64,000 bases of DNA, from contig JANJGN010000022.1 in the NCBI GenBank assembly GCA_026770705.1, forward strand, positions 31,372,001 to 31,436,000, given 5' to 3'. The stretch is from Isurus oxyrinchus (taxonomy: Eukaryota). Both the position numbers and the translations under genes were made by a program. Of the stretch, positions 216-43,702 are shown one piece after another (positions within the stretch are counted from its first letter, which is position 1; each line of letters opens with the position of its first letter). Under the pieces are notes generated by a model, which saw nothing but the letters and a program-made list of their open reading frames with translations, searched no databases and was not told where the DNA came from.

Positions 216-806
216 CAAATTATGTATGAAAATAGTCATCCAATTGTCTATACTAAAAAGATGAACTTCAGAACACTTGTTTTCCAAAAGCAAGATGCAA
301 ATTGGCATGAACGAGAGCTAAGGTTATAGAACTCTTATATGACAAGATCGGGATAGTTAACTTCCTCCCCAGGAGGATCTGGAAAGCACTGATGTTGGGT
401 GTGCTATCTTACCCTGAAATTGTATAAATGCTTCCATCTTATTGATCCCCAACACCAGACTGGCCTGTAACATATACAAGGAGGAGTGTGTTAAACAATT
501 TTACAGCTGAGGATCTTTATTTAAAACACAGCTTGGGCTGAAGAACACCACCATGAGAACAGTGCCAGCATCTAATAGTCTGCAATTGAGTCATTTTAGC
601 TCCTTTCTAGAGAGTTATGGGAAGATTAAAGTTAGTTTATATTAAAATGAAAACTGGGCCCAGACTTCAATTTTCAAATTACAGTTGGGCTGAAGACCTT
701 TTTTCTTCTTTTACGGAACGCTGTGATGTCGAAAACTGAACCATTTATTATCCATCACAGGAGAAATAATATTCACTGCAATCACCATTAAACATCAGCT
801 CCCTGG

Positions 807-817
807 TCACTTGACAT
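807..817 (-). CDS. Terminal coding exon, copy A (G|AT GTC AAG TGA)
   Basis: Strong polypyrimidine tract tttttttgtcttttaacag, conserved in copy B. An intervening exon cannot be excluded. Confidence 0.55.
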
Positions 818-4364: not shown

Positions 4365-4382
4365 TTCCAGAATGCAGTTCAT
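4298..4382 (-). CDS. Leader-peptide exon, copy A (ATG at 4364, in-frame upstream ATG at 4382)
   Basis: Hydrophobic leader; donor A|GTAAGT; acceptor ...ctttccctaaataagcag directly before 4382. Confidence 0.75.
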
Positions 4383-5164
4383 CTGCTTATTTAGGGAAAG
4401 TACAGAAACATCATTAAGCCTCAGGAATTTAATCAAGCCTGATTTCACTTTTCTTGTGCATCACATTAGTTTTCTTTCAGGAATTTTAAGGAGATATATA
4501 ATGCTGCACCAAAAATTCCATTAGGGAAATTTGCTTTGCTAAAATATTTTGAATGTTCATAAATATTGTGTGTTACTGAAAAACAAACAAATGCATTTTG
4601 TACTGTGTTCCTACAATTCTCACAGCAAGAATCCTGGAATCAATGAACTGACAATAGTATACAAATGGACACCGCAATGGCTCCAATCTTGACAGGGGCG
4701 GGTTATTTATGTTGAAGACAGAGTTTCAGGCACCGATTGCAGATTTCCCACGTATTTTGTAGAATTTTGAATCAACAACGTCTTTTTGCAGGATCAGCTC
4801 CCCACCCCCCACTGTTTGACATGATTGACACCGAGGCGGATGGGGCACATTCTGGAGCAAGCTGCAGCTGCTACTAGGAGCCAGGGGCTGTCCGATCCTG
4901 GACCTGCGATGGTCCGATCCTGGATGACAGCCCAATCCGAATGGCCATCATTGTGCAATTGTGCAATTCTGGCACAGAATTTCCATGGAGATTTCCCCTA
5001 ACTCCCAACATCACTCCAGTAGAAGATAACCGAAAAAGTCTGACTGTTGAAGTTATTCCATCACAGGGTACATCACAACTGTTGGGGCAATTCTTGCGAA
5101 ATTGGTGATTAAACTCCAGACCATCCTGATCTCTCTACTGCTCATCTATTTACAGAATAAATGT

Positions 5165-6445
5165 AGTGAGCAACCAGGTCCCCTTGTCCCCACTTCTCAC
5201 CCCACAAGGCTCCACATTCAAAGGATCATCCTCCGCCATTTCCGGCAACTCCAGCATGATGCCACCACCAAACAAATCTTACCCTCACCTCTCCTGTCGG
5301 CATTCCATCGGGACCATTCCCTCCAGGACACCATGAGCTACTCCTCCATCACCCCAATGCTTCATCCCCTTCCCACAGCACCTTCGCAGGCAATCACAAA
5401 AGGTGCAACACCTGCCCCTTTACCTCCTCCCTCCTCAACATCCAAGGGCCCAAACACTCCTTTCAGGTGAAGCAGTGCTTCACTTGCACCTCCTTCAATT
5501 TGGTCTACAGCATCTGCTGCTCCCTACGCGGTTTCCTCTACATTGAGAAACCAAACCCAGACTGAGTGACCACTTCGTGGAACACCTTTGGTCTGTCTGC
5601 AAGCATGACCCAGACCTTCCTGTCGCTTGCCATTTCAACACACCATCCTGTTCTCATGCCCACATGTCAGTCCTTGCCCTGCTGCAATGTTCCAGTGAAG
5701 CCCAACACAAACTGTAAGAACAGCACCTCATCTTTCAATTAGGCACTTTACAGCTTTCCGGACTTAACATTGAGTTCAATAAATTCTGATCATGAACTCT
5801 CTCCTCCATCCCCATCCCTATTTTTCTAAATTCATTTTTATTTTTTATCCATTTATTTTTATTTTTATTCATTTATCCATGGTTTTATCCCATTTTTATC
5901 CCATTTTCTATCCTGTTTTTCCCCCATCACTGCCCCCTCCTCCAACTTATCTCTTACAGGGCCAACTATTATTTGTTCCTCTCCGCAGATGCTATCAGAC
6001 CTGCTGAGTTTTTCCAGCTTTTTTTGTTTTTGTTTCAGATTTCCAGCTTCTGCAGTATTTTGCTTTTATTGTGGTCTTTCACACAATGCTACCCTTGTTC
6101 TGCTATTATCACATTCTGCTTTCTTACCTTTATGCCATTCAGCACCTTTTTTAGCACTAACCACTACCATTAACAATCCCTTTGCCCTCCAGTTCATGAC
6201 ATCTTTGTCAACCCCTCCTTAGCCCCCACCTACTGCTGGCTTTATATCCAGCTCCACCTGCCCCACCCCCCTTAAAGAGTATACATTTCATGACATTTCC
6301 ACTTATCTTCTGCTCTGAAGAAGGGTCATACTGACTGGAAATGTTAAATTTGTTTCTCTCTCCACAGATGCTGTCAGACTTGCTGAGTTTTCCCACTATT
6401 TTCTGTTTTTGTTTCAGTTATCCGGCATCCACATTATTTAGCTTT
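5165..6445 (+). mobile_element. Penelope-like element 3' fragment (degenerate GIY-YIG) with tandem pLTR end
   Basis: Paralogue in B translates to FTCTSFNLVYCISCSQCGLLYIGETKRRLGDHF; the cagatgctg..agacctgctgagtttt block is repeated at ~5985 and ~6365; hammerhead-like ctgaagaagggtc...gaaat at ~6315. Confidence 0.85.
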
Positions 6446-6975
6446 TAGCTTTGTTTAAATATTCTGATGCCTTTCGAGTTTATATTTGCCGTTAACAAGC
6501 TTTGAATGTTTGCAAGTAGTTATACTGGCTGCCTGAGTTTAAGGTTTTAAACTGCAGACGTTTACTGTCCAGGTGATAGTGCTGAGGGTTATGTTATTCA
6601 GACATTAGAAACAATCTGCAGGGTTACGGGGAAAAGGCAGGAGATTGGCATTCAGTAAAAATGCTCAAAAGAGCCGGTGCAGACACGATGGGCCGAATGG
6701 CCTCCTTCTACCCGTAACGATCCTGTCATTCTGTGACTGCTTCTAAGAAATGATCCCATTCTGTTAGGCGAAGCCAGTTTCGGGAGATCAGTGCGAAGAT
6801 CACTATCTCTGATGTAACAATGCATGATGTGGCTGTTGCCATTTCTGCTAAAAGCGCTGATACATATTTTGATGTAACTAATCTTTCTGATGGGGTCTCA
6901 GGGAACAACAAACAGAGAACAATAATTTTTGACAAATCAGCAGTCAGGCCCCCGGCTGTTTATATTCCTTTCTAA

Positions 6976-7575
6976 TTCCGGGAATACTGCAACAATTGAA
7001 TTTTACATTTCAAATTCGTTTACTGCATTTATTTCTGTTAACCCAATCCTTCCTCCATCCTTAGCTAATTTCTTCAATTATACACACAACACTCATTTTA
7101 CACAAGAGTCAACAAAATATTTCTCACATTTTCTGAAAACCTGGCCGTACTTTTTTTTTCCTCAAGCAAAATATGGAGATCCAACCAGCCCAACTCCAAA
7201 CTGACCCAGGAAAAGACACCTTTCAAAATCCGACACGCTGACAATCGCTGCGAATGATTCAGGGATCTCAACACCGAACATCTCACCTGAAGCCGGAACC
7301 AAGGGCTGGGATCTGCGGGGAGCGAGTCGGCTGTTGGCTCTCGATCCACTGTCCAGTCTGGGATAGTTAGCAGCGCCTGTTAGCTTGTGCCATTGACAAA
7401 CAGTGAGCAAAGGTATCTCCTCCACCCTCCACTATCTCTCCTCTCAGCCTGTGGTGTCGAAATGAACAAAACAAAGAGACTTTTACTGCCTTTCAAACTT
7501 TCTCTTTCGATCCGGCTGGACACAAGCCTGTTGCCAAGAAGCCAATTCCTCGCCCCGCCGCAGAATTACCCCACC
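6976..7575 (-). promoter_or_regulatory. Putative CpG-retaining promoter/5' region of B7 copy A
   Basis: GAS TTCCGGGAA at 6976-6984, IRF-E-like GAAAGAGAAAGT at 7508-7497, GC box at ~7549-7560. GAS and IRF-E are identical in copy B. TSS not determined. Confidence 0.45.
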
Positions 7576-7589
7576 TGCACCGCTCAGGA

Positions 7590-7747
7590 ATCTTTCAGGT
7601 TAAAACAATTAAACCAAATCAACAAAATGAGGACAAATCAAGCACAGCCCCTAATTCAGGTCAGCTGTAAAACTAAAGACAAAATTTAAAGGAAACTTAC
7701 AACTTTAAACCAAAATGTGATTAAAGGGGTCAATAAAACACCCCAGT
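7590..7747 (-). mobile_element. 5'-truncated Tx1 (3' UTR and ORF2 end) with 15-bp TSD
   Basis: Matches Tx1 3' end at 8402-8555; TSD ctgcRccgctcagga at 7575-7589 and 7748-7762; empty site at 51880-51894. Confidence 0.9.
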
Positions 7748-8199
7748 CTGCGCCGCTCAGGATACAGATGGAAACACCCTAAAGATTTTTTTACCTGAAA
7801 CTATTTAAATAAGAGATTGTTGTGAACTAAATTTGATAAGTCATTTTAAAGGAGAATTTTTTTTCACATTGAGGAAAGTCTGTTCTTGACTTCTTGCAAG
7901 CGCAATTCAGCCAAACAATGAGGTGGAATAAAGTCAATCTGTATAAGACAATCTAAACCTGTGACTTAACTGCTGAAAATAATTTATATTGTCCCCTATC
8001 TATTATTATTGCAGAAAAGAAAAATTAACTTTGCTACTTCTTATACTCCAGGAAATCTCACCTCAGTTCAAAAATCGGAAATAGACGATACTAAATTGTA
8101 TTGCAGCTGTATTTACCAAGGGAGACGCTGCTGCTCAGATCATGGTGAAAGAGAAGCTCATTCAGACACTTGACAGGTTTAAGACTGAGGTTTTGGTTT

Positions 8200-8393
8200 G
8201 GCTTTCTGTACTTAAAGTAGATAAGACACCACGACCGGCTGAGATATATGCAGAGACTGAGGGAAGTGAGAGTGGGGAAGCACTATTTGCAATTTTCCCA
8301 CCCTAGCGTGCTGGCAGAGGACTGGAGAATCGCAAACCCTTGTTCAAAAAAGGGGTTTAAAGATAAGCCCAGCAAATGAAGCCAGTCAGTTTA
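8200..8393 (+). mobile_element. CR1 RT fragment interrupted by the Tx1/SINE array; resumes at 22720-23100
   Basis: Degenerate CR1 ORF2 sequence (gactggagaatcgcaaa...ccagtcagttta); the other side reads MYMDFQ...FDK and DRLVEWADKWQ. Confidence 0.65.
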
Positions 8394-8510
8394 ATTGTGA
8401 TAATCTTTTAAATGAAAACCAAATCAACAAAATCAGGATAAATCAGGCACAGCCCCTAATTCAGGTCAGCTGTAAAATCAAGAACAAAGTTTAAAGGAAA
8501 CTTACAAACT

Positions 8511-11500
8511 TTAAATCAAAATGTGATTAAAGGGGTCAACAAAACACCCCAGTCCCCGCGGTGCCCACCGGGCATGGAAGGCCTCGAGAGTGCCAGTAGA
8601 CACCGCGTGCTCCCTCTCCAGGGACATCCGGCAGCGAACGTAGCCGCGGAAGAGGGACAAACAATCGGGCGGGACTCCCCCGTCGATCGCCCGCTGCCTG
8701 GACCAGTTAATGGCCAACTTGGCCAGGCCCAGGAGTAGGTTCACGAGGAGGTCCTCCTCCTTCCCGACCCCCTTCCGCACCGGGTGCCCATAGATCAGGA
8801 GCGTGGGGCTGAAGTGCAAACAAAACATCAATAAAAGGTTTTTCAAATAACTAAAAAGGGAGTGCAGCCTACAACACCCTATGTATACATGGTCCACGGA
8901 CTCCACAAGACCGCAAAAAGGGCACGTGTCCTGAGAGTCCGTGAACCTATGCATCCTCTTATTATAGGGGACTGCTGCGTGCAACACCCTCCAACCCAGA
9001 TCCCTGATAGAAAGGGGGAGGACACCTCCGTAGAGGGCCTCCCATCGGGGGCCTCCGCCGCCGGACGGCAACAAGGCACGCCAGGGCGTGTCCGGTCGAC
9101 AGACAAGGGCGAGAAAATGGAAGGTGTGCAGCAGCAGTCCGTACACAAAGCCCCTCTTTGCTGTGCCAAAAGGCACGGAGGGCATGTCCCCGAGGCGGCT
9201 CATATTGCGGGGCACCAGCACCCTAGGGAGGGATCGGCGCTTGGGGCCAATGTGGAATTCCGTCCGAACAGGGGAACGTTCAGACGGAAGACCACCGCGC
9301 ACCTGGGCCACCTCAAGACCCAAAATAACGTCGGGTCCTAGCACGACCGTTCTCAGGTCTTGGATGGCATCGGCTGCGACCTGGACACTCACAGATGCGC
9401 GTCGCGCCAACTCCTGCGGGAGCATCCAGCCCAGTCCTCCGCCACCCAGCACGTCCCCGATCCTGGTCACCCCTGCGGCCACAGCCCTCCTCTCCACCAA
9501 CCACTGAAAGGGACGGAGGGGCGGATTCCTGATGGGGGAGAGCTGCGTCGTGAGGCGACCACTTTCCAGACTTTGATCAGGTCCTGGTAAAAGATGGGCA
9601 ACGCCTGCAAGGAGCCACCGAGGCCCAGCTGTTCTATATACAGGAGCTGCACGTCATAATTCAGGCCGTGCACCTGACGGAAGAAATACGTCGTCAGGGC
9701 ACACCATCTAGGAGGAGGCTCAACGTAGAGGTATCGCTGCAGGGTCTGAAGGCGGAAAGTCGCCACCTGTGTGCGTAGGCACACTAGCGCCTGACCGCCA
9801 TCCCTAAGCGGGAGACTCAGAACCTCGGCAGCGACCCAGTGCAATCTTTTGTCCCAGAAGAAGTCGACTAACAATCTCTGGATTCTTGTGACAAAGTCCG
9901 GGGGAGGGGTCAAAGTGACCAGCCGATACCACAACATGGCGGCGATCAGCTGGTTTATGACCAGAACTCGACCTCGGTAAGATAGCACTCGGAGCAGTCC
10001 TGTCCAGCGCCGCAGGCGAGCGGTGACTTTCGTCTCCATTTCCTGCCAGTTTGCCGGCCAGGATTCCTCAGCAGGGCAGAGATGGACCCCCAGGTAGAGG
10101 AGGCTGGTCCTGCTCCAGGTGAAAGGCCTGAGCTCCTCGGTTAGGGGATCCATCTGCCACTGACCGACCAGGAGTCCAGAACATTTACCCCAGTTGATCC
10201 TGGCAGAAGAAGCGGCAGAGTAGACCTCCTGGCACTTGCGCATCCTCCGCAGGTCAGCCCGGTCGCTAAACATAAGGAGCACGTCATCGGCGTAAGCCGA
10301 AAGGACCACCCCGATGCCCGGCCCGCGCAGGACCAATCCCGACAATCTCCTCCGCAAGAGGCACAGGAAAGGCTCCACGCAAATAGAATACAACTGGCCA
10401 GACAGGGGGCAGCCCTGACGTACCCCTCTCCCAAAGCGAAGGGGCGCCATCAGGGACCCGTTAACCTTCACTAGACACTCCGCGGCGGTGTACAGAAGTC
10501 GGATCCGGGCGACAAAATGCGTCCCAAACCCGAACGCTCGCAGAGTTCCGAGTAAGTATCCGTGATCCACCCTGTCGAACGCCTTCTCCTGATCGAGAGA
10601 CACGAAGGCGCTCAACAGACCAACCCTCTGGGAATAGTGGATGATGTCCCGGACCAGATGGATGTTATCATAAATGGTTCGGTCCGGGACGGTGTAGGAC
10701 TGGTCAGGGTGGATCATGTGGACCAGCACAGTGCCGAGCCGGGAAGACATGGCTCGGGCGAAGATTTTGTAGTCCGTGCTGAGGAGGGAGACCGGGCGCC
10801 AGTTTTTAAGAAGGCGGAGATCCCCCTTCTTCGGCAGCAGGGCAATCACGGCCCTGCGCCACGAAAGGGGCATCTCCCCGGTAGCAATGCTCTCCCCCAG
10901 GACCCCCGCGAAGTCGCTCCCCAAGACGTCCCAGAACGCCCTGAAGAACTCCACGGTCAGCCCGTCTAGTCCCGGGGATTTGCCCCTAGAAAGACCGTCG
11001 AGTGCGCCGGTCAGCTCCCCCAGACTTATAGGGGAGTCAAGCCTTCCGGCGCACTCCGGGCTGACCTGCGGCAGGTCCTCCCACAAAACTCTGCAAGCGT
11101 CCTCGCTGGACGGATCCGGAGAGAACAGGGCAGTGTAGTAATCTCGGGCGATGGCCCTGATGCCCTCCGGATCCGAGACAAGGGATACGTCGTCGGCCAG
11201 CAGCATAAAGAGCTGCTGACGGACCCCGTGCCTTTTTTCCAGCGAGTAGAAGAAGGGGGAGCCACGGTCCATCTCCCTGAGGAACCGGATCTGCGACCTC
11301 ACGAACGTGCCCCGAGACCCGACCAGTTGCAGGTCCCGCAGCGCGCCCTTCTTCTCATCGTACACCGACTGCAGGGCCGGGTCTGCATCAGGCTGACGGA
11401 GACGTGCCTCCAGGTCGAGCACCTCCTTCTCCAACTCCTCGACCCTGGATTTGCGTCTCTTTGTCGACCCCTTCGCGTACTCTTGACAGAAAACTCGGAC

Positions 11501-12373
11501 GTGAGTCTTGCCCACGTCCCACCATAGCCTCAAGGAGGGGAAGCCTCCCTGCTTCCTTCTCCAGCCGGCCCAGAAACGACGGAATGAGTCCAGGAACCGC
11601 TGGTCTTCCAACAACAGGTTATTAAAATGCCAGTACGCGGACCCCGTCCGAGCGCAGAACGAAGTGAGCTCCGCCCACACCAGACGGTGGTCCGTGCACG
11701 GAACCTGCCGTATAGAAGCAGCCGGAACGCAGGACACGTACGCCTTTGAAACGTAAAGGCGGTCGAGTCTGGACGCTCCGACTCCAGGTGACACAAAGGT
11801 GAACACGCTGGAGTCAGGATGGAGATTTCGCCAGACGTCCACTAAGTCGAAAGACCTGACCAGGTCCCGCAACTTACTCACACCTCGCGTGCAGTGCGGG
11901 GTACCGTGACGGTCCCGGACCCCGAGGGTGCAATTGAAATCCCCCCCGAGGACGATGCACTCGCCAGCGTCGATGGAGCCGAGATGAGTGGACACTTCTT
12001 CAAAGAAGCTCGCTTGCTGCTGCGTGCCCAGGGGAGCGTACACATTCACAAAGTGAAGCACCGCCCCCCCCAGACGCACAGTCAGGTGCAGCAACCGGCC
12101 TGGCACCAGCTCCTTGACCCCCAAGATCTCCGGCTGAAAATGTGGGGCCAACAAGATAGCCACCCCGCCAGAATTGGAGGCTAGGTGACTCATGTAGAGC
12201 CCCCCTCGCCACTCCAGGAGCCACGTGGCTTCGTCTCCCGGAACGGTATGGGTTTCTTGCAGGAGGCACAACGCATACTTCCCGTCCCTGAGGACCGAGA
12301 AGTTCTGGAACCTGCGCTGTGCGCCCCTGCTGCCGCGGATGTTGAGGCTGGCTATAGTCGTCTTCATTGTCAA
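8511..12373 (-). pseudogene. Tx1 copy 1 ORF2 (APE-RT-Zn), frameshifted near 9530
   Basis: LQETH, GGDFN, TDHR, LDQEKAFD, QGCPLSG, YADD, CPFC...H...C. A ~34-bp deletion between tcctga repeats, relative to copy 2, splits the ORF. Confidence 0.92.
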
Positions 12374-12423
12374 AGGTACATCAAACCTTCACCTTAAGTA
12401 ATTAAAAAGAAGAAGAGGACTTT

Positions 12424-14531
12424 TTAGTCCTTCCTCTCCTTCAGGAGCCCAGCGAGAAACGTTTGGACCCTCCGCCGCGGGTTCCTATCCAACTCAGGAG
12501 ACTTGAGAGCCTCGCGAGTGGACCAGAATACCAGCGGAAATGAATGCCACCGGTCCAACGCCAACTGAACCCTGTCTCGGCGACCGCGGTGCCCCGACAA
12601 AAAGTCCCGGAGTTCCCTTGGGGGGATGAGGGGGGAGTCAGTGGAGGGCACCAGGGGATCCACCGCCTCGCCTGAGAGCGACTCCGCGTAATCCCCAACG
12701 CTCACCACCGACACCCCGTCCTCCTCCGGGTCGTCGCCTCCAGCTTCCGACCCCTCCCGCGCATTGAGTACGGGGTCTGATTCGGAGCTGCCAGCTGGCT
12801 CTATCTCAGCCTCGATCCCACCCCCAGGATCAAGGCCAGAGGAGTCCTCTCTGGTCTCCTCGAAACTTTTTAGGCCAGAGGGCAGCGGCAGTTCTGATGC
12901 CCGCTCTCCTCCCGGCACCGGGTCATCCGGGGAGCTCAGGACAAGCTCCTGACCTAAACATAGGACGCCTGGTGTCAAGGTTTGGGAGGGAGCGGGAAGG
13001 CCCTCTTTTTCGCCGCCACCCAATGACCCATTTACATTCTTTAAAATTTCAAAGCTGCAATCCCCCGACGAGCTAGAAAGTACCTCGGGGGTATTAAGTG
13101 CCCTGGAGTCGGACACCACCTCAAGGGAGGTGCCCTCAGCGACCCCCGAGGGGCCCTGTTCAGGGGACTGCAGCAGACTGTTAGGGGGAACAGTGGGAGG
13201 GGTAGGTGTTTCGGGTTCTCCCAGAGGGCAGGGCGAGGTTTTACTGGGTGGAGACGCCACCACCTCTTCATCAGGGGAAGGGACACACCCAACTTCTTCA
13301 GTTTGGGCATCGCCCACTTCCTCCTCTGAAACGTGACGCCTCTTCTGGGTCAGGCTGGGGGCTAGGGAGACCTCCATTTCCGAGGCCCCCTCCTCCTTTC
13401 CCAGCCCTCCCGGACACTCCACCCTCTGGGTTTTCAATTTTTCTTTCGGCTCGGGGTCCCGCGTCTTTTCCCCGCCGGCCCCGGGAGCACGCGCAGGGAC
13501 GACGCCGGGCCCAGCACTCGGCGCCTTAGCGCCCACGGACCCGGGAGCACACGCGGACACGACGCCGGGGCCGGATGATGTTTTCTCCCCCAAGCCGGTT
13601 TTTCCATGTGTTTGAGGGGTTTGGAGCGTCTTCCTCCGCGCCTTCTTACGGCGCGGGGGCTCTCACCCCGCCTCACCGGCAACCGAGATAGCAACTGCTG
13701 CAGGGGTCGCTTCCCCTTGCGGGGAGGGAGATGGAGTGGTGGCGGGTGGTGGAGGGGCGGTGCCAGCCGCGGCTGCTTGGGTGGGGCTCGTGGCCTTGGA
13801 GGCGGGGCAGTTCTTTCTTATGTGCCCCGCCTCCTTACAGGCATGGCACCGCACGCCCTCCGTGGTCCAGAAGACCCGATAGGCGGTCCCCTCAAAATTA
13901 ACAACGAAAGCCCCCTCCAGGCATTCCTCCCGGGCCAAACGGATGAAAACCTGGCGCCGGAATGAGTACACGTGGCGGAGGGTCGAGTCTCTGAGGCCGA
14001 GCGGGACTGGCGCAACCCCTGACCTGACCTCCCCCAGCTTATTAAGGTGGGGGAGGAGGAGCTCACATGGTATAAAGGGCGGGACGTTCGAAATAACAAT
14101 CTTCTGGGCGGTGGCCTCAAGGGGGTCCACCGCCAGAAAAGTCCCGCCCACAGTGAGCTGATTCTGCAGGGCGAGTTGCACCGCCCGCTCGGACCTCAAG
14201 AAAAAGATGGCCCTCCCATACATTTTTGAGGCCGCGACAACGGCTGAGGGGCCGACAACCCCAGCCATAGCCTTCACGCAGGCCTCAATAGTCATCTCCG
14301 GGTGGGCGTAGCACTTAACCCCGAGGGCCCTGGTTAGGAGGCGGAGTGGTGACAGGGCAGCGGGAGCAGCTGGTGCTGCAGAAGCAACCACCCCCGCATA
14401 GGTTTTCTTTTTTGAGGCCCTGCCACCGGTGACAAAACCACCTCCACATTAGCCCTCGAGGGGCCGGCCACAGGCGATGGTGAATTGGCCTTAGGGCCAG
14501 AGCCACGCCCACCCTGGGAAGGATTGGCCAT
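12424..14531 (-). pseudogene. Tx1 copy 1 ORF1 (gag-like, CCHC), frameshifted
   Basis: Three ORF pieces that together match the 713-aa ORF1 of copy 2. Confidence 0.9.
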
Positions 14532-15469
14532 TTTGTTTTTTGTTTTTTTTTTAATTTTTAATATATATATATATATACACGTAGTATTCCTCCTTGGGAA
14601 GGAAAGGGGGTGGGGGAGAGAGGTAGAAACAACCTCCCCTCTTTTAGGCAGGAGAGGAGAGGAGGGAGAGGAGTAAAAGACAGAGAGGCACAGGAGGGAA
14701 AGAGGTAAATGTCCAGGTGGGTGTCCTCGATGGTGGATGGATGGTGGGTGGGGGCCTGATGTTCTTCAGGCAGGGGGAGGCGATGTCTTCACCAGCTACT
14801 GCTGGCCTTACCGGGAAAGGGCTGGGTTGGGGGAGGGGTGGCAGAAAGATGGTTTCAGCACACACACACACCCTCCCTCTCTTCCTTCCCCAACCCCTCT
14901 GGCAGGCTTCTTGCCTCCCCCTACAAAACACAGTCCTTAATTGCCCCCACCTTAAACAAAAATACACAGTTCAGACACCCACCTAGGATGTTGTTTTTCA
15001 ACTCAGTCCTGGCCTCCTGGCCTTCCTGTCCTGTAGCAACAGCAGCAAAAGTTCTCTTCTCTCCCTCTCTCTCCTTTTGCACCACAAGGGCAAGGGAGCA
15101 GCAGCAGCAGCACTGGAGGAGCAGCAGCAGCAGAAGCAACAACCCCAAAGCAGCAGCAGCAGTTGTTCCTCTCTCCCTCTTGGTCCAAACAGGGGCAAGG
15201 CAGCAGCAGAAGCAACAACCCCAAAAGCAGCAGCAGAAACAGTTGAAACACTGAAGAGGAGCAGCAACACCAACACCACACACCTTCTCTCCTCAGGATC
15301 AGGGAACAAACTGAATCCACAATTGCCTCAACGAGATCGTTAAGAAGATGAACTCTCGATAATCTTTTAAATGAAAACCAAATCAACAAAATCGGGATAA
15401 ATCAGGCACAGCCCCTAATTCAGGTCAGCTGTAAAAACAAGAACAAAGTTTAAAGGAAACTTACAAACT

Positions 15470-18400
15470 TTAAATCAAAATGTGATTAAAGGGGTCAACA
15501 AAACACCCCAGTCCCCACGGTGCCCACTGAGCACAGAAGGCCCCGAGAGTGCCAGCAGACACCGCGTGCTCCCTCTCCAGGGACATCCGGCAGTGAACGT
15601 AGCCGCGGAAGAGGGACAAACAATCGGGCGGGACTCCCCCGTCGATCGCCCACTGCCTGGACCTTTTAATGGCCAACTTGGCCAGGCCCAGGAGCAGGTT
15701 CACGAGGAGGTCCTCCTCCTTCCCGACCCCCCTCCGCACCGGGTCCCCATAGATCAGGAGCGTGGGGCTGAAGTGCAAACAAATCATCAATAAAAGGTTT
15801 TTCAAATAACTAAAAAAGGGAGTGCAGCCTACAACACCCTATGTATACATGGTCCACGGACTCCACAAGACCGCAAAAAGGGCACGTGTCCTGAGAGTCC
15901 GTGAACCTATGCATCCTCTTATTATAGGGGACTGCTGCATGCAACACCCTCCAACCCAGGTCCCCGATAGAAAGGGGGAGGACACCTCCGTAGAGGGCCA
16001 CCCATCGGGGGCCTCCGCCGCCGGACGGCAACAAGGCACGCCAGGGCGTGTCCAGGCGGCGGACAAGGGCGAGAAAATGGAAGGTGTGCAGCAGCAGTCC
16101 GTACAAAAAGCCTCTCTTTGCTGTGCTAAAAGGCACGGAGGGCATGTCCCCGAGGCGGCTCATATTGCGGGGCACCAGCACCCTAGGGAGGGATCGGGGC
16201 TTGGGGCCAATGTGGAATTCTGTCCGAACAGGGGAACGTTCAGACGGAAGACCACCGCGCACCTGGGCCACCTCAAGACCCAAAATAACGTCGGGTCCGA
16301 GCACGACCATTCTCAGGTCTTGGATGGCATCGGCTGCGACCTGGACACTCACAGACGCGCGTCGCGCCAACTCCTGCGGGAGCATCCAGCCCAGTCCTCC
16401 GCCACCCAGCACGTCCCCGATCCTGGTCACCCCTGCGGCCACAGCCCTCCTCTCCGCCAACCACTGAAAGGGACGGAGGGGCGGATTCCTGAGCAGCGGG
16501 TCTCTGACGATAGCCGCTACTCCTGACGGGGGAGAGCTGCGTCGCGAGGCGACCACTTTCCAGACTTTGATCAGGTCCTGGTAAAAGACGGGCAACGCCT
16601 GCAAGGAGCCACCGAGGCCCAGCTGTTCTATAAACAGGAGCTGCACGTCATAATTCAGGCCGTGCACCTGACGGAAGAAATACATCGTCAGGGCACACCA
16701 TCTAGGAGGAGGCTCAACGTAGAGGTATCGCTGCAGGGTCTGAAGGCGGAAAGTCGCCACCTGTGTGCGTAGGCACACTAGCGCCTGACCGCCCTCCCTA
16801 AGCGGGAGACTCAGAACCTCGGCAGCGACCCAGTGCAATCTTTTGTCCCAGAAGAAGTCGACTAACAATCTCTGGATTCTTGTGACAAAGTCCGGGGGAG
16901 GGGTCAAAGTGACCAGCCGATACCACAACATGGCGGCGATCAGCTGGTTTATGACCAGAACTCGACCTCGGTAAGATAGCACTCGGAGCAGTCCTGTCCA
17001 GCGCCGCAGGCGAGCGGTGACTTTCGTCTCCAGTTCCTGCCAGTTTGCCGGCCAGGATTCCTCAGCGGGGCAGAGATGGACCCCCAGGTAGAGGAGGCTG
17101 GTCCTGCTCCAGGTGAAAGGCCTGAGCTCCTCGGGTAGGGGATCCATCTGCCACTGACTGATCAGGAGTCCAGAACATTTACCCCAGTTGATCCTGGCAG
17201 AAGAAGCGGCAGAGTAGACCTCCTGGCACTCGCGCATCCTCCGCAGGTCAGCCGGGTCACTAAACATAAGGAGCACGTCATCAGCGTAAGCCGAAAGGAC
17301 CACCCCGATGCCCGGCCCGTGCAGGACCAATCCCGACAACCTCCTCCGCAAGAGGCGCAGGAAAGGCTCCACGCAAATAGAATACAACTGGCCAGACAGG
17401 GGGCAGCCCTGACGTACCCCTCTCCCAAAGAGAAGGGGCGCCGTCAGGGACCCGTTAACCTTCACTAGACACTCCGCGGCGGTGTACAGAAGTCGGATCC
17501 GGGCGACAAAATGCGTCCCGAACCCGAACGCTCGCAGAGTTCCGAGTAAGTATCCGTGATCCACCCTGTCGAACGCCTTCTCCTGATCGAGAGACAGGAA
17601 GGCGCTCAACAGACCAACCCTCTGGGAATAGTGGATGATGTCCCGGACCAGATGGATGTTATCATAAATGGTTCGGTCCGGGACGGTGTAGGACTGGTCA
17701 GGGTGGATCATGTGGTCCAGCACGGTGCCGAGCCGGGAAGACATGTCTCGGGCGAAGATTTTGTAGTCCGTGCTGAGGAGGGAGACCGGGCGCCAGTTTT
17801 TAAGAAGGCGGAGATCCCCCTTCTTCGGCAGCAGGGCAATCACGGCCCTGCGCCACGAAAGGGGCATCTCCCCGGTAGCGATAGTCTCCCCCAGGACCCC
17901 CGCGAAGTCGCTCCCCAAGACGTCCCAGAACGCCCTGAAGAACTCCACGGTCAGCCCGTCTAGTCCCGGGGATTTGCCCCTAGAAAGACCGTCGAGTGCG
18001 CCGGTCAGCTCCCCCAGACTTATAGGGGAGTCAAGCTTTCCGGCGGACTCCGGGCCGACCTGCGGCAGGTCCTCCCACAAAACTCTGCAAGCGTCCTCGC
18101 TGGACGGATCCGGAGAGAACAGGGCAGTGTAGTAATCTCGGGCGATGGCCCTGATGCCCTCCGGATCCGAGACAAGGGATCCGTCGTCGGCCAGCAGCGT
18201 AAAGAGCTGCTGACGGACCCCGTGCCTTTTTTCCAGCGAGTAGAAGAAGGGGGAGCTACGGTCCATCTCCCTGAGGAACCGGATCCGCGACCTCACGAAC
18301 GCACCCCGAGACCCGACCAGTTGCAGGTCCCGCAGCGCGCCCTTCTTCTCATCGTACACCGACTGCAGGGCCGGGTCTACATCAGGCTGACGGAGACGTG

Positions 18401-19382
18401 CCTCCAGGTCGAGCACCTCCTTCTCCAACTCCTCGACCTTGGATTTGCGCCTCTTTGTCGACCCCTTCGCGTACTCTTGACAGAAAACTCGGACGTGAGT
18501 CTTGCCCACGTCCCACCATAGCCTCAAGGAGGGGAAGCCTCCCTGCTTCCTTCTCCAGCCGGACCAGAAACGACGGAACGAGTCCAGGAACCGCTGGTCT
18601 TCCAACAACAGGTTATTAAAATGCCAGTACGCGGACCCCGTCCGAGCGCAGAACGAAGTGAGCTCCGCCCACACCAGATGGTGGTCCGTGCACGGAACCT
18701 GCCGTATAGAAGCAGCCGGAACGCAGGACACGTACGCCTTTGAAACGTAAAGGCGGTCGAGTCTGGACGCTCCGACTCCAGGTGACACAAAGGTGAACAC
18801 GCTGGAGTCAGGATGGAGATTTCGCCAGACGTCCACTAAGTCGAAGGATCTGACCAGGTCCCGCAACTTACTCACACCTCGCGTGCAGTGCGGGGTACCG
18901 TGACGGTCCCGGACCCCGAGGGTGCAATTGAAATCCCCCCCGAGGACGATGCACTCGCCAGCGTCGATGGAGCCGAGATGAGTGGACACTTCTTCAAAGA
19001 AGCTCGCTTGCTGCTGCGTGCCCAGGAGAGCGTATACATTCACAAAGTGAAGCACCGCCCCCCCCAGACGCACAGTCAGGTGCAGCAACCGGCCTGGCAC
19101 CAGCTCCTTGACCCCCAAGATCTCCGGCTGAAAATGTGGGGCCAACAAGATAGCCACCCCGCCAGAATTGGAGGCTAGGTGACTCATGTAGACCCCCCCT
19201 CGCCACTCCAGGAGCCACGTGGCTTCGTCTCCCAGAACGGTATGTGTTTCTTGCAGGAGGCACAACACATACTTCCCGTCCCTGAGGACCAAGAAGTTCT
19301 GGAACCTGCGCTGTGCGCCCCTGCTGCCGTTGATGTTGAGGCTGGCTATAGTCGTCTTCATTGTCAAAGGTACATCAAACAT
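15470..19382 (-). CDS. Tx1 copy 2 ORF2: endonuclease/reverse transcriptase (1190 aa open, single +1 frameshift at A6 run 15812-15817)
   Basis: All APE/RT motifs present; copies 1 and 3 have A5 at this run. Confidence 0.9.
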
Positions 19383-19414
19383 TCACCTTAAGTAAAAAAG
19401 AAGAAGAGGACTTT

Positions 19415-21556
19415 TTAGTCCTTCCTCTCCTTCAGGAGCCCAGCGAGAAACGTTTGGACCCTCCGCCGCGCGTTCCTATCCAACTCAGGAGACTTGAGAG
19501 CCTCGCGAGTGGACCAGAACACCAGCGGAAATGAATGCCACCGGTCCAAGGCCAACTGAACCCTGTCTCGGCGACCGCGGTGCCCCGACAAAAAGTCCCG
19601 GAGTTCCCTTGGGGGGATGAGGGGGGAGTCAGTGGAGGGCACCAGGGGATCCACCGCCTCGCCTGAGAGCGACTCCGCGTAATCCCCAACGCTCACCACC
19701 GACACCCCGTCCTCTTCCGGGTCGTCGCCTCCAGCTTCCGACCCCTCCCCCGCATTGAGTACGGGGTCTGATTCGGAGCTGCCAGCTGGCTCTATCTCAG
19801 CCTCGATCCCACCCCCAGGATCAAGGCTAGAGGAGTCCTCTCTGGTCTCCTCGAAACTTTTTAGGCCAGAGGGCAGTGGCAGTTCTGATGCCCGCTCTCC
19901 TCCCGGCACCGGGTCGTCCGGGGAGCTCAGGACAAGCTCCTGACCTAAACATAGGACGCCCGGTGTCAAGGTTTGGGAGGGAGCGGGAAGGCCCTCCTTT
20001 TCGCCGCCACCCAATGACCCATTTACATTCTTTAAAATTTCAAAGCTGCAATCCCCCGACGAGCTAGAAAGTACCTCGGGGGTATTAAGTTCCCTGGAGT
20101 CGGACACCACCTCATGGGAGGTGCCCTCAGCGACCCCCGAGGGGCCCTGTTCAGGGGACTGCAGCAGGTTGACGGGGGGAACAGTGGTGGTAGTAGGTAC
20201 AGGAGTTTCGGGTTCTCCCAGAGGGCAGGGCGAGGTTTTACTGGGTGGAGACGCCACCACCTCTTCATCAGGGGAAGGGACACACCCAACTTCTTCAGTT
20301 TGGGCATCGCCCACTTCCTCCTCTGAAGCGTGACGCCTCTTCCGGGTCAGGCTGGGGGCTAGGGAGACCTCCATTTCCGAGGCCCCCTCCTCCTTTCCCA
20401 GCCCTCCCGGACACTCCATCCTCTGGGTTCTCAATTTTTCTTTCCCCAGCTCAGGGTCCCGCGTCTTTTCCCCGCCGGCCCCGGGAGCACGCGCAGGGAC
20501 GACGCCGGGCCCAGCACTCGGCGCCTTAGCGCCCACGGACCCGGGAGCACACGCGGACACGATGCCGGGGCCGGATGATGTTTTCTCCCCCGAGCCGGTT
20601 TTTCCACGTGTTTGGGGGGTTTGGGGCGTCTCAGGGACCGCCTCCAAATTTCGGGTCTTCCTCCGCACCTTCTTACGGCGCGGGGGCTCTCCCCCCACCT
20701 CACTGGCAACCGAGATGGCAGCTGCTGCCGGGGTCGCTTCCCCTTGCGGGGAGGGAGATGGAGTGGTGGCGGTTGGAGGAGGGGCGGTGCCAGCCGCGGC
20801 CGCTTGGGTGGGGCTCGTGGCCTTGGAGGTGGGGCAGTTCTTTCTTATGTGCCCCGCCTCCTTACAGGCATGGCACCGCACGCCCTCCGTGGTCCAGAAG
20901 ACCCGATAGGCGGTCCCCTCAAAATTAATAACAAAGGCTCCCTCCAGGTACTCCTCCCGGGCCAAGCGGATGAAAACCTGGCGCCGGAAGGAGTACACGT
21001 GGCGGAGGGTCGAGTCTCTGAGGCCGAGCGGGACTGGCACAACCCCTGACCTGACCTCCCCCAGCTTATTAAGGTGGGGGAGGAGGAGCCCACATGGTAT
21101 AAAGGGCGGGACATTCGAAATAACAATCTTCTGGGCGGTGGCCTCAAGGGGGTCCACCGCCAGAAAAGTCCCGCCCACAGTGAGCCCCTTCTGCAGGGCG
21201 AGTTGCACCGCCCGCTCGGACCTCAAGAAAAAGATGGCCCTCCCATACATTTTTGAGGCCGCGACAATGGCTGAAGGGCCGACAACCCCAGCCATAGCCT
21301 TAACGCAGGCCTCAATAGTCATCTCAGGGTGAGCGTAGCATTTTACCCCGAGGGCCCTGGTGAGGAGACGGAAAGGTGACAGGGCAGCGGGAGCAGCTGG
21401 AGCTGCAGAAGCAACCACCCCCGCATAGGTTTTTTTTGTAGGCCCTGCCACCGGTGACAAAACCGCCTCCACATTAGCCCTCGAGGGCCCGGCCACAGGA
21501 GATGTTGAACTGGCCTTAGGGCCAGAGCCACGCCCACCCTTGGAAGGATTGGCCAT
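19415..21556 (-). CDS. Tx1 copy 2 ORF1p (713 aa), nucleic-acid-binding protein with zinc knuckle
   Basis: Intact ORF; CHACKEAGHIRKNC; ISNVPPFI RRM-like segment; low-complexity C-terminal half. Confidence 0.92.
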   Translation of the reverse strand: MANPSKGGRGSGPKASSTSPVAGPSRANVEAVLSPVAGPTKKTYAGVVASAAPAAPAALSPFRLLTRALGVKCYAHPEMTIEACVKAMAGVVGPSAIVAASKMYGRAIFFLRSERAVQLALQKGLTVGGTFLAVDPLEATAQKIVISNVPPFIPCGLLLPHLNKLGEVRSGVVPVPLGLRDSTLRHVYSFRRQVFIRLAREEYLEGAFVINFEGTAYRVFWTTEGVRCHACKEAGHIRKNCPTSKATSPTQAAAAGTAPPPTATTPSPSPQGEATPAAAAISVASEVGGEPPRRKKVRRKTRNLEAVPETPQTPQTRGKTGSGEKTSSGPGIVSACAPGSVGAKAPSAGPGVVPARAPGAGGEKTRDPELGKEKLRTQRMECPGGLGKEEGASEMEVSLAPSLTRKRRHASEEEVGDAQTEEVGCVPSPDEEVVASPPSKTSPCPLGEPETPVPTTTTVPPVNLLQSPEQGPSGVAEGTSHEVVSDSRELNTPEVLSSSSGDCSFEILKNVNGSLGGGEKEGLPAPSQTLTPGVLCLGQELVLSSPDDPVPGGERASELPLPSGLKSFEETREDSSSLDPGGGIEAEIEPAGSSESDPVLNAGEGSEAGGDDPEEDGVSVVSVGDYAESLSGEAVDPLVPSTDSPLIPPRELRDFLSGHRGRRDRVQLALDRWHSFPLVFWSTREALKSPELDRNARRRVQTFLAGLLKERKD

Positions 21557-22004
21557 TTTTTTTTAAATATATAATGTTCCTCCCTAGGGAAAGAGGTAGT
21601 AATAACCTCCCCCTTTTGTGCAGGAGAGGGGAGGAGAGGAGGGAGTAGAGTGAAGGACAGGGAGGCACAGGAGGGAAAAGGGAAGAGTCCAGGTGGGTGT
21701 CTCCAGTGAAAGGTGGACGTTGGGTGGGGGCCTGATGATCTTCTTGCAGGGGGAGGCGATGTCTTCACCAGCCACCACTGGCCTTACTGGGGAAGGGCTG
21801 GGTGGGGCGGGGGGGTAGCAGAAAGGTGGTTTTAACCACACACACACCCCCCTCTCTTCCTTCCCCAAACCTTCTGCAGTCTTCTTTCCTCCCCTACGAA
21901 ACACAGTCCTTTATTGCCCCCACCTTACACAAACAATAACGTTGGACACCCACCTAAGATGGTGTTTCTTGACACAGTCCTGGCCTCCTGGCCTTCCTGT
22001 CCTG

Positions 22005-22260
22005 CAGCAGCAACAGAAGCTGTTCTTCTTCTCTCCCTCTCTCTCCCTTTGTTCCACAGGGGCAGGTCCAGCAGCAGCAGCAGCAGCAGCAGCAAACACC
22101 CTCGAGTGCAGGTCCAGCAGCAGCAGCAAACACCCTCTAGTCCAGGAGCAGCAGCAGCAGCAAACACCCTCGAGTGCAGGGGCAGCAGCAGCACACAGCA
22201 GAAGCAACCCCAAAAGCAGCAGCAGAAACAGTTGAAACACTGAAGAGGAGCAGCAACACC
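22005..22260. repeat. (CAG/CTG)n-rich subrepeats in Tx1 5' UTR (also ~15030-15270 and ~59330-59450)
   Basis: Runs of cagcagcag with repeated aaacaccctcgagtgcagg units. Confidence 0.85.
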
Positions 22261-22413
22261 AACACCACACACCTTCTCTCCTCAGGATCAGGGAACAAAC
22301 TGAATCCACAATTGCCTCAACAAGATCGTCAAGAAGATGAACTCTCGATCTTGGGGTTACAAACCCAGTACCATAACCACTTGGCTCTCATACCCGAACC
22401 CTGATTTGATGTA

Positions 22414-22715
22414 ACTCTTTCGAGTACAAACACATTTCCATCTGTCATTTCAGATGAAGTTACATTGTTTTTCATTGTGAGATTTGAACTCTTGATAAGC
22501 ACAAACTTGTTTCCATCTGTTTCCAGATGAAGTTACATTGTTTCATAGTTTTGCCATTGTGAGATTTGAACTCTTGATTTCTTTTGAGTACAAACCCGTT
22601 TCCATCTGTTTCAGATGAAGTTATATTGTTTCATAGTTTGCCATCGTGAGATTTGAACTCTTGATCTTTGGGTTACACACCCAGTACCATAACCACTTGG
22701 CTATTTAGGCCAAGC
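22414..22715 (-). mobile_element. tRNA-Thr(UGU)-derived multimeric SINE (head plus 3 units of 82-87 bp), 15-bp TSD
   Basis: A box TAGCCAAGTGG, B box GAGTTCAAATC; TSD ccctgatttgatgta at 22399-22413 and 22716-22730. Confidence 0.85.
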
Positions 22716-23282
22716 CCCTGATTTGATGTACATGGACTTCCAAAGATTATTTGATAAATTGTTGCACAACAGTCTTGTAAAAAAAATTCAAGCTCTTGAA
22801 ATAAAAGGGACAGTAGCAGCATGGATGCAAAATTGGCTGAGCGACAGAAAACAGAGTGATAAATGGTTGTTTTCTGGACTGGAGTTTATAGTGGAATTCC
22901 CCAGGGATTGGTGTGGGGCATTCTGCTCTCCTCAATATATATTAATGATCTAGATTTGGTCTAGGGCATAAATTCTAAATTTGTGGATATACAAAATTTG
23001 CAATCTTGTGAACTGTGATGAAGATAGTTTTAATCTTCAAAAGGAGATAGACAGGTTAGTGGAATGGGCAGACAAGTGGCAGATAAAATTTAATGCAGAG
23101 AACTTAACAAAGGATATCTGTAGCTCCTCAACCCTTCCCTGTCTCTGTATACCTGTGCTGTTTAAAATTAGTGTAACAAAGGACTGGCTGTCCTCCTTTC
23201 ATTACATTTGATTTGGCAAAAAAACAATTGTATCTGAGCCGTCACTGAACTTTCCCCACCAGCGCTACTCAGGATACACATG

Positions 23283-23961
23283 GGCCTGAATTTTCCCATT
23301 GGCGATTTGGGGGTGGGGCCCGCTCGCTGACTGGAAAATGACACCGGATGGCGTTGGGAGATAGCCCCAATGTCATCCCGGTCCCTTTAAACTTTTAGGA
23401 AGCCGGGCGGACAGCAAAATCATCTGTCCACTCGCCGAACTGTCAGTGGCCAATTAAGGCCATTGACAGGATAATTAAGATATTTAAAGACCTGCCCGTC
23501 CAACCTTAAGGCTGGCGGGCAGGCCAGGAACCCCAGCGGGCTCCAGATTATTCATGTAACCTCACCCACTGGCAGCAGGAGGTTTCATGTCCGTTTTTAA
23601 AAAGTGTAATAAAGTTTATGTCCTTTTTATTAACATGTCCCATATTGTGTGACATTGTCACATGAGGGGGACATGTTAATAATTTTTTAATTTTTCTATT
23701 TTTAAAGATTTTTTCACTGTCAGTAATCTCCCTGAGACAGCACTTTGTCTCAGGGGGCAGTGTGCACTTTAACAGATGGGAAATCCCTCCACCCCGCACA
23801 GGAAGTGCATAGCGCTTCCCCTCGGGCAGGACGCTGGGGGAGCCTTAATTGGCCAGCCCACGCAAAATGGAGGAGGGTCCCATTTCAGTGGCAGGGTTCA
23901 GCTGTCCGCCCGCCGCAGAGCTGGTGGGGCCCACACACCCACCAAGGCAAAAATTCTCCCC
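23283..23961. mobile_element. Harbinger-type MITE (paralogue at ~60175-60856)
   Basis: Imperfect TIRs GGCCTGAATTTT / GGGGAGAATTTT; flanks ATG / TTG. Confidence 0.7.
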
Positions 23962-24124
23962 TTGGAAACACCCAGAAGGTCCAGAATGAGAGGCAAAGTA
24001 AAGAATTTTTTCCTGAAAATATTTAAATAAATTTTGTGAAATTGGGTCTATTTTCCTTGTAGAAGAGGGGTCTGAAAGGAGATTTGATAACCTCATGAGA
24101 GGTCTGGACAGTGTAATTAGGGAG

Positions 24125-27100
24125 CAAATGGGTGAGTACATGTTACCTCAAGTCACTAATGCAGGCCCTTTCCCCCTGGCACCACCACCACCGCAGCACC
24201 CCACCCCCTACCCGGCAACTCTGAGTACAGTAGCGGCATTGAATCCTTCACGGCATGTATCCTTCGCTGGGTGCAGCAACAGATATTGCCCATGCTTAAT
24301 TCACCGTGAGCAGGTTGAGCTAGGATGTGTTCTGCATCCGCAGCATATGTGACACTGACACCCAGAGTATAGAATGGAGATGAAAGTCAAGGATCTGCAC
24401 CTAGGCATAGTGCTGGAACTGGGAAGCATGTCAAAGTCAGGGTGCTAAACATGCTGGGAGGGGAGCTTCCAGTTGGCAGGGCACCAATCCATCTGCTGGT
24501 CTTTGCGCTCCACATGCTTGTGCCTCCTTGTTTAGTAAAGTGACACCTTGTGGTGCCACATGTGAAGTAGGCAGCATTTGGGCAATGGTGGGGGGGTGGG
24601 GGGTGGGAGCCAGCCCTGGCTAGTTTGGGTGAGTGTGTGGCAGCTGCGGGGTGACGAAGAACCTGAGCCCTGTAACGTCCCACTCTGGCTGGGGTGGCAG
24701 GGATGTGATGGGAATTCAGGTGCAGGCTGGACGAATCAATGCTCTTCTCTCCTTTTCAGAAGAAGACTGCGCACAATTCCGCAGAATGGATGTGGACTGG
24801 CAGAAGCCAGGCCCAGTTGGCCATCCTAATGGCTTACGAGCAGCAGGCCATGGATCTGGAGAGGTGCCATGCCCCCAGGTCCACCGGTGGTGGTGAAGCT
24901 GGAGTGCCACGAGGAGGTATCTTTGTCGAGCACTCAGGTCACCATGTGTGTCCCAGAAGCAATGACACTGCTGAATGCTCCGTGATTGAAGTTAGCAACA
25001 TGGGATTACCACTGCTATTGAAGAATGAGCACATAATGATCTAGGAGAGCAGCATGCAAGTTGACATTGTCTGCACTGTAACTAATCAAATGTCCTTTTT
25101 CTTCCTTTCAGCATCACTGGAGCAAGGCTGGGAGAAGGAGGCAGAGGGCCCACCTCGCACCCTGAGGCCCCTGAGCAAATCCACTCACCAGTGTCACACC
25201 ATCTCAGCAAGGGAGGCACCAGCACAGATACTAGCACCTCGGTGGAAATTAGATCTTTGATTAGTGTCCCAGGCCACGGTGGTGAGGGTACTTCACAGTC
25301 GCTTGAGGTGCGTTCAGAGACAGAGAGTGCCCACAGCGCCGGCAGTTGGAGGACTGCTGGAGACCAGGTGCATGCTTAGTCGGAGGCTGATGATGAGCCT
25401 CTGCAGTCATCTGTGAGGCAGCGAATGCTGGAAGTGCAGCAGGGTATGCGGGACGATCTGATGGAATACATGAGGGTATGCGTGGCATAGTGCCTGTGCT
25501 TGAAGAGACCACGCAGAGCATCACCAATGCAATGAGCCTCATGGCTGAGTGCCATGCTTCTTCCAGAGCGAGAGTGGCGACTCTCACGGAGATGCTCATC
25601 CAGGAAAACAAGTAGGTTTTCCTGAGGTTGCGCTCGGACCTGCAAGCCCTCACAATGGAATTACCCTCAGCTGATCAGTGCCAGTGTGGGAGATAGTTTG
25701 GGCACCAAGAATCCCAGCTCAGTGCCCATCTATCGATGGTGGGCAGGGAGGTCCAAAGCAACCTCACGTTGGCATAGCAGATGCCTGTCTGTGGGTCTCT
25801 GCGTGTTCCTCTCAGGGCATTCCGGATGAGGGCAGAAGCTCCTCCGCCCCTCTACCAGTGACTGGGGCATCCGATGAGGCTGCGGTGACTGGGGAGGTGT
25901 TAGGCGTGGAACTAGAAGCTCCCTCCTAGGCGGGGCTGTCAAAGGCTCCACGGTCCAGAGGATGTCCGCCAAGGTCATTGAGGCCAACAGGACAGCAGAG
26001 TGAGTAGGCCGTCTCAGATGCCAGTCCCAGCAAGGGGACAGCACCGAGATGTAGCACCCACAAGTGTAAATGTAAGGCACCTTAGGCACACCATGGGTTT
26101 CTCACTAGTACTTTTATGTTGGCCATAATAGTTTCTGGAAGACTTGGTGTGATGTCCAACACCTTTTTTTTTTGCTTTATGAAGTTACGTTTATTCCCTC
26201 AATAAATTTTGATATGTTGCCATTGCTCAGGGTGATTCCTTACTTCTGCAGGTGGACAGGATCCCATGATGTTATGAGTGAGTTGTTTGACATTGAGCTT
26301 TATTGACAAAGACCTTGGTTAATGTTAGTATCCAGGCTGATTTAGCACTCAGGTGTCGAGTCAGGACCCTGCAGCTCTGGCATCTGAGGGGTCTAGCTGA
26401 AGGTTGTTTGGATTAAAGCCTCCCGGGTGTCCCTGTCCCCCTGGAGTATGCCTGGGTCAGCATCTACCCCTCAGCATTTCCCTATGCGTGCTCAGCCTCG
26501 GACTCACTGCTGGACTCATCGTGTGCAGCTGCAGCCACTGCGTCTATGTCTTCATCGTTCACTGTGTCCCCCCTTTTCAGTGCAAGATTGTGCAGAGCGC
26601 AGCATGCAACCACTATCACCGAGACACGATCTGGGAGGTATTGGAGTTTGCGCCCAAGTGGTCCAGGCATCAGAAGTGCATCTTGAGAAGACCGATGACT
26701 CTCTCCACCACAGCCCTTGTGGTGCCCTGGCTCCTATTGTAGCGCTGCTCAGCTTCTGTTCTTGGATGGCGGAGAGGCGTCATGAGCCACCTTCTGAGGG
26801 GATAGCCCTTGTCACCCACCAGCCATCCATCCAGCCGAGCCGGAGCACTGAAGAGCCCCGGCACCTGGGAGTGTCTGAGGATGTAGGCATCGTGGGAGCT
26901 GCCTGGGTACCTTGCACAGACTTGTAGAATCTGCATCCTGTGATCACACACTATCTGCACGTTCATGGAAGCCCTTCCTGTTGATGAAGGCACCGGGCTC
27001 ACCTGCTGGCGCCTTGATGGCCACATGTGTACAGTCTATTGCACCCTGGATGTGGGGGAAGCCAGCAATGACCGCAAAGCCTCTGGCTCACTGTGTCTGG

Positions 27101-43445: not shown

Positions 43446-43702
43446 ACAAATTATGTATGAAATTAGCCATCCAATTGTCTATACTAAAAAGATGAACTTC
43501 AGAACACTTGTTTTCCAAAAGCAAGATGCACATTGGCATGAACGAGAGCTCAGGTTATAAAACTCTTATATGACAAGATTGGGATAATTAACTTCCTCCC
43601 CAGGAGGATCTGGAAAGCACTGATGTTGGGTGTGCTATCTTACCCCGAAATTATATAAATGCTTCCATCTTATTGATCCCCAACACCAGACTGGCCTGTA
43701 AC

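Follow-up and report, generated by a model that had tools for sequence, protein, structure and literature searches.

Several families of the Tx1 clade of long interspersed elements (LINEs) are target-specific: Tx1L inserts in Tx1D, Keno in U2, Mutsu in 5S, Dewa in the tRNA-Leu spacer, and Kibi and Koshi in microsatellites (PMC4494074, PMC3706591). In crocodilians, Tx1-Mar and the short interspersed element (SINE) SINEU have a common target, and their tandem copies sandwich a target site duplication (TSD) (Kojima 2015; PMC4494074). Some Tx1-Mar families also carry U1 or U2 heads that are nearly identical to SINEU heads (PMC4494074). This pair is the closest precedent for the locus studied here, a stretch of 64,000 nt from the shark Isurus oxyrinchus (GenBank assembly GCA_026770705.1, contig JANJGN010000022.1, positions 31,372,001 to 31,436,000, forward strand). 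The whole stretch is called the window; it holds three copies of a Tx1-clade LINE (c1, c2 and c3) and a SINE in multimeric form.

As in Tx1-Mar and SINEU, the LINE and the SINE of the shark have nearly the same small-RNA-derived head. However, the shark head is tRNA-Thr-like, of the RNA polymerase III (Pol III) type, whereas theirs derive from U1 or U2, and the proposed target lies inside the shared head and not in a Mariner DNA transposon. Tx1-Mar and SINEU have a preferred insertion site and tandems that sandwich TSDs; for the shark pair a subfamily-level site preference is plausible, judged from this window and from contigs of two read sets. The second open reading frame (ORF2) resembles that of the sequence-specific Tx1 families in its APE, reverse transcriptase (RT) and CCHC parts and is 49% identical to that of Tx1L, and the insertion is likewise tied to a multicopy sequence of small-RNA type. 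Unlike in those families, in which nearly all copies lie in a single target, a truncated copy and the commonest tail variant of the shark LINE lie in unrelated sequence. The solid part of the findings is that one old Tx1 insertion, linked to the head and lying next to a multimeric tRNA-Thr SINE, was multiplied first by a segmental duplication and then locally in tandem; homing into the head is only weakly supported.

History of the three Tx1 copies

Self-BLAST of the window showed that positions 1-24130 (copy A) are paralogous to 43232-61034 (copy B) in collinear blocks with 89-97% identity, and the duplicated flanks differ by a non-CpG divergence of 0.021-0.064. The position of c3 in copy B is that of the c1/c2 pair in copy A, with an upstream flank and a 3' flank (ATCACAATTAAACT...) of identical origin. 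Because c3 is thus the segmental-duplication paralogue of the c1/c2 locus, the shared 5' and 3' flanks of the Tx1 copies are inherited. In a three-way alignment c1 and c2 agreed against c3 at 344 sites, compared with 125 and 118 sites for the remaining two patterns, and this excess holds along nearly the whole element. The non-CpG divergences of c1-c3 (0.052) and c2-c3 (0.058) both lie inside the range of the flanks, and that of c1-c2 is 0.035. These alignments indicate that the three Tx1 copies derive from one ancestral insertion, followed by the segmental duplication and by local copying in copy A, and that c1 and c2 are sisters formed locally after the segmental duplication. The original prediction had counted several independent Tx1 hits in the window; self-BLAST, site patterns and divergence reduce them to one. 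An independent arrival of c2 from a master element is ruled out by the 344 sites common to c1 and c2.

The predicted Tx1-clade identity was supported. In Pfam searches ORF2 of c2 matched Exo_endo_phos (3.5e-8), RVT_1 (1.5e-35) and zf-RVT (7.8e-4). It carries YADD in the RT and a C-terminal Cys-His motif (CPFC...H...C), and it is 49% identical, at 99% coverage, to the 149-kDa Tx1 protein of Xenopus laevis (YTX2_XENLA). Resting on domains, motifs and the closest named relative, the assignment of the LINE as a genuine Tx1-clade element is sound. None of the 65 private substitutions in the ORFs of c2 creates a stop codon, whereas the ORFs are broken in its sister c1 and also in its paralogue c3. 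A search with ORF1 found no shark relatives, and a metagenome scan with the 5' 19-mer of the LINE gave four matches, all bacterial or phage and by chance. Run X23, raw reads of another organism, yielded 38 reads, all of less than 90% likeness and all in the 5' untranslated region with its GCA/GCT repeats; the LINE family was not visible in it.

The shared head and the junction behind the LINE tail

On direct reading of the minus strand, all motifs, heads, 12-mers and SINE junctions of the original prediction were present where it had placed them. Heads of the form AGCCAAGTGGTTATGG... lie at 59560, 43914, 22702 and 22386. A tRNA-Thr-like head common to the LINE and the SINE is borne out by two comparisons, of 22338-22400 with 43866-43928 (93.7% over 63 nt) and of 43860-43916 with 59506-59562 (94.7% over 57 nt). 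The 12-mer ATCRAGAGTTCA inside the head occurs eight times in the window, always on the minus strand. Its fourth position is G beside all three LINE copies (15360, 22349 and 59523) and A in all five SINE units (22665, 22578, 22496, 43877 and 43789), each of which it opens.

The heads differ in how well they match a tRNA. The cloverleaf at 59496-59568 is the sole sequence here above the Rfam tRNA threshold; SINE head 1 aligned with the whole model at 22.3 bits, below the family threshold. Comparison of the heads (59496-59568 versus 22703-22710 and 22338-22398) showed that the copy B head consists of the 5' end of SINE head 1 (GCCTAAAT) and LINE-proximal sequence. The copy B cloverleaf is therefore probably a recombinant of these two heads and not a genuine tRNA gene. 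Most economically, the SINE trimer of copy A is older than the segmental duplication and was lost from copy B when the two heads recombined. Relative to c3, both c1 and c2 have ∼11 additional nt (TCTTCTTRACG) in the head's T-loop region (22338-22349 onward versus 59512-59496). This extra stretch resembles a slipped duplication of ATCTCTGTTGAG, and read depth suggests that the form with it may be the commoner one in the LINE family.

The junction of the tandem pair is precise. The tail of c2, AAAAGATT, is directly followed by ATCGAGAGTTCA (15361/15360) and then by the 5' end of c1, so that the join lies at the exact 3' end of the LINE, with a microhomology of ATC only. A random DNA duplication of 7 kb is unlikely to give a junction at this place, which is where target-primed reverse transcription would naturally put it if the head were nicked between AAG and ATC.

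Public reads and Logan contigs were aligned to window positions 15060-15660; the contigs are short and were aligned at ≥85%. In the runs of two organisms, nine contigs (X1) and seven contigs (X5) read from the LINE tail through ATCGAGAGTTCA into AATCTCACAATGGCAAA. The latter continuation is SINE sequence, and this junction of LINE tail, 12-mer and SINE is without counterpart in the window. Two further X5 contigs contain the LINE tail, the 12-mer, an A and a 5'-truncated LINE (its last 40 or 245 nt), the arrangement that arises when insertions stack with a TSD of 12-13 nt between them. Stacked copies around a constant TSD are thus represented by one case in the window (c2, 12-mer, c1) and by these two single contigs.

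In the sequence of events proposed here, an old Tx1-clade LINE was joined to a tRNA-Thr-derived head of SINE type before the segmental duplication of ∼18-24 kb, which gave rise to c3 and to the ancestor of c1 and c2. The LINE of copy A was then copied again locally, and the new junction coincides exactly with the LINE 3' end and, within the head, with AAG^ATCGAGAGTTCA. As the most likely cause we infer that RNA of the locus itself was reverse-transcribed from a nick in the head by target priming, which would leave the 12-13 nt of ATCGAGAGTTCA(A) sandwiched between the two copies, a mode of stacking known from site-specific Tx1 elements and their SINEs. The same joining point recurs at other loci, where LINE tail, 12-mer and SINE unit follow each other, and at the internal junctions of the SINE multimers. 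The chances that the c2/c1 junction was caused by target-primed insertion at AAG^ATCGAGAGTTCA(A) of the shared head appear evenly balanced.

SINE multimers and insertions at other sites

The SINE consists of a tRNA-Thr-like head and two or three units of 82-88 nt, each restarting at ATCAAGAGTTCA and with variable 3' ends. Its internal junctions lie at 22496, 22578 and 43789, as first placed, and it contains no T4 run. The dimer behaves as a mobile unit, with a 16-nt TSD, a tRNA-like head and an empty paralogous site at 456-471. Like the tRNA-derived SINEs (SINE2), the shark SINE has A and B boxes in a tRNA-like head, TSD-flanked insertions and an empty paralogous site. Unlike them, it has a body made of a variable number of units, each restarting in the variable loop/T arm, and it lacks both a poly(A) and a tail homology to the adjacent LINE.

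Three insertions in the window have a clear TSD and are each missing at the paralogous site: the SINE dimer, the SINE trimer and a 159-nt LINE (7589-7747), the matching site of which in copy B is without insert. None of their TSDs is head sequence, and therefore neither the LINE family nor the SINE is strictly site-specific. The TSDs of the SINEs begin with GTTACAG (43930-43945) and TACATCA (22716-22730), and the X1 consensus past the common LINE tail (clip 15375) is GTGTTACAGTG; with three data points, a nick-site preference around TACA may be common to the SINE TSDs and the LINE tail flank. The downstream TSD copy of the trimer (22399-22413) abuts the 5' edge of the LINE head, so that the landing site of this SINE is 0-15 nt upstream of a head of Pol III type.

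The ends of the LINE and the SINE had been predicted to be alike, which is true of AAAGA.T and of nothing beyond it: the last 200 nt of the LINE scored 9.0 against the SINE, with a shuffle mean of 10.5 (P 0.88). Mobilization of the SINE by the Tx1 LINE, as originally proposed, is not established, because it rests on these ∼6 terminal bases. The idea that an A/B-box promoter kept in front drives the full LINE also fails. Pol III terminates at oligo-T (PMC4494074), and the sense strand of the LINE contains 28 runs of at least four T, the first of them 186 nt from the start of the head. These runs rule out the head as a Pol III promoter from which the full LINE could be transcribed.

The coordinates of all features are collected in Table 1.

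Table 1. Features of the LINE/SINE locus (positions in the window).
Feature	Position	Strand	Remarks
Segmental duplication copy A	1..24130		Holds the tandem LINE pair, SINE trimer and truncated LINE; self-BLAST
Segmental duplication copy B	43232..61034		Holds a single LINE (c3), tRNA-like head and SINE dimer; self-BLAST
Tx1 copy 1 (c1)	8402..15348	minus	ORFs broken; 3' end AAAAGATT, then ATCACAATTAAACT
12-mer ATCGAGAGTTCA	15349..15360	minus	Between c2 tail and c1 5' end (tandem junction)
Tx1 copy 2 (c2)	15361..22337	minus	Both ORFs open
c2 ORF2	15810-19382	minus	1190 aa; APE, RT with YADD, C-terminal CCHC
c2 ORF1	19415-21556	minus	713 aa; one CCHC knuckle
Head 2, tRNA-Thr-like	22338..22398	minus	Directly 5' of c2; includes 12-mer 22338-22349; Rfam tRNA 17.1 bits, model positions 9-63
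SINE trimer (head 1 and units U1-U3)	22414..22715	minus	Flanked by TACATCAAATCAGGG at 22716-22730 and 22399-22413; absent from copy B
SINE dimer (head and two units)	43703..43929	minus	TSD GTTACAGGCCAGTCTG at 43930-43945 and 43687-43702; empty site in copy A, 456-471
Tx1 copy 3 (c3)	52696..59495	minus	ORFs broken; c1/c2 paralogue by segmental duplication
Complete tRNA-Thr(TGT)-like cloverleaf	59496..59568	minus	Abuts c3 5' end; ARAGORN and Rfam (49.4 bits, model positions 1-71)
Copy from this LINE family, 5'-truncated	7589..7747	minus	159 nt; TSD CCTGAGCGGYGCAG at 7748-7761 and 7575-7588

Two observations lie outside the LINE/SINE system proper. A repeat of ∼136 nt, MITE- or SINE-like in look (MITE, miniature inverted-repeat transposable element), is inserted in the LINE 3' flank of copy B (52547-52682) and is absent from that of copy A. 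Further copies of it lie at 50908-51047, 5976-6069, 6348-6447, 50482-50585 and 29962-30066, and two copies form a palindrome at 50860-50960. Of the words sampled from window positions 15000-23000, 28% occur in run X20, a coral metatranscriptome by its label.

Explanations of the junctions and their meaning

The broadest reading of these data is self-targeting: the homing site of a Tx1 subfamily would be AAG^ATCGAGAGTTCA(A), within the variable loop/T arm of the head it shares with the SINE, each hit would regenerate the site, and LINE and SINE units would accumulate in head-to-tail order after one A-box half. We regard it as tentative and less likely than not. The predicted insertion of Tx1 at the head site is supported in so far as the LINE ends before ATCGAGAGTTCA both at the c2/c1 junction and in the contigs of two read sets, as repeated insertion at one site would produce, but the LINE family is not strictly site-specific. 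Several results weigh against homing into the head. The number of visible targeted events within the window is one, and the 3' flank of the ancestral LINE copy is ATCACAAT..., not the 12-mer and the remainder of the SINE (P 0.34-0.5). A TCACAAT in this flank had been taken as a match to the SINE; as a 7-mer it does no better than shuffled sequence (P 0.34-0.5). Halves of a target on both sides of the element are therefore not seen: there is a head 5' of the LINE, but no significant SINE remainder in the 3' flank of c1 and c3. The head sequence is absent from all three clear TSDs. The commoner variant of the LINE tail (clipped at 15375) has heterogeneous flanks with an agreement of 0.7-0.77 that do not read ATCGAGAG, and most of the LINE family thus lies elsewhere. 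Together with the TSD CCTGAGCGGYGCAG of the truncated copy, these flanks speak against one 3' target for most LINE copies; a preference for the head site at the level of a LINE subfamily is possible. The contigs joining LINE, 12-mer and SINE could stem from many hits or from one composite amplified whole, for instance by 3' transduction of a SINE unit, and a microhomology-mediated DNA duplication is a possible source of c2.

Such a duplication, through the 3 nt of ATC or by unequal exchange, is part of an explanation that dispenses with targeting altogether, in which the SINE multimers come from multimeric masters and the head is shared through common descent or an accidental insertion beside a SINE. 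The origin of c1 and c2 as sisters in situ and the clear-TSD insertions at unrelated sites agree with it. So does the SINE itself: without a T4 run a multimer is transcribable whole by Pol III, the dimer, enclosed by a single TSD and matched by an empty site in copy A, may have come as a unit, and the first SINE units are 93% alike across the two loci and only 83% alike to their neighbours. However, the second units are not clearly position-specific, as A_U2 is 84% alike to B_U2 and 86% to B_U1. It would also be rare for a random duplication of 7 kb to have its breakpoint no more than 3 nt from the 3' end of the LINE, and the same junction of LINE tail and 12-mer, together with the TSD-sandwiched stacking, is found in contigs from other loci in two read sets. 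Taken as a whole, an explanation without targeting appears doubtful. It is unlikely that the head is instead the LINE's own 5' end, a tRNA-Thr-like RNA captured by template switching of the reverse transcriptase, with the A46 junction reflecting a fixed 5' end or a stall and end-to-end template jumping and not a DNA nick preference. Such a capture has a precedent in the one proposed for the U1/U2 heads of Tx1-Mar (PMC4494074), and in copy B the tRNA homology continues through GTTGAGGCA to the discriminator base, the body of the LINE starting right after it (Rfam 49.4 bits, six of seven acceptor pairs). The variable 3' ends and the fixed restart point of the SINE units would likewise be expected of jumps onto variable acceptor positions. 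Yet this cloverleaf probably arose by recombination of SINE head 1 with the LINE-proximal part, and head 2 in copy A lacks a paired acceptor stem (17.1 bits). A TSD enclosing both head and LINE, which the original prediction had named as a check on this origin, was looked for and was not significant (P above 0.3). The contigs in which LINE tail, 12-mer and A are followed by a truncated LINE are also better explained by a DNA target and its TSD than by template jumps.

A Tx1 element with a preferred site in a shared tRNA-Thr-like head would be a plausible variation on the known Tx1 habit of target specificity. For the analysis of such loci, the window gives reason for caution, as recurrent junctions within a single window can be segmental-duplication paralogues and not independent insertions. 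If homing into the head is real, this shark has a Tx1 lineage that uses as its safe haven the head carried by its own family and by a SINE. It would extend the list of Tx1 targets, which includes DNA transposons, snRNA, 5S and tRNA spacers and microsatellites, and it would provide a concrete route by which LINEs gain Pol III-type heads and by which SINE multimers originate.

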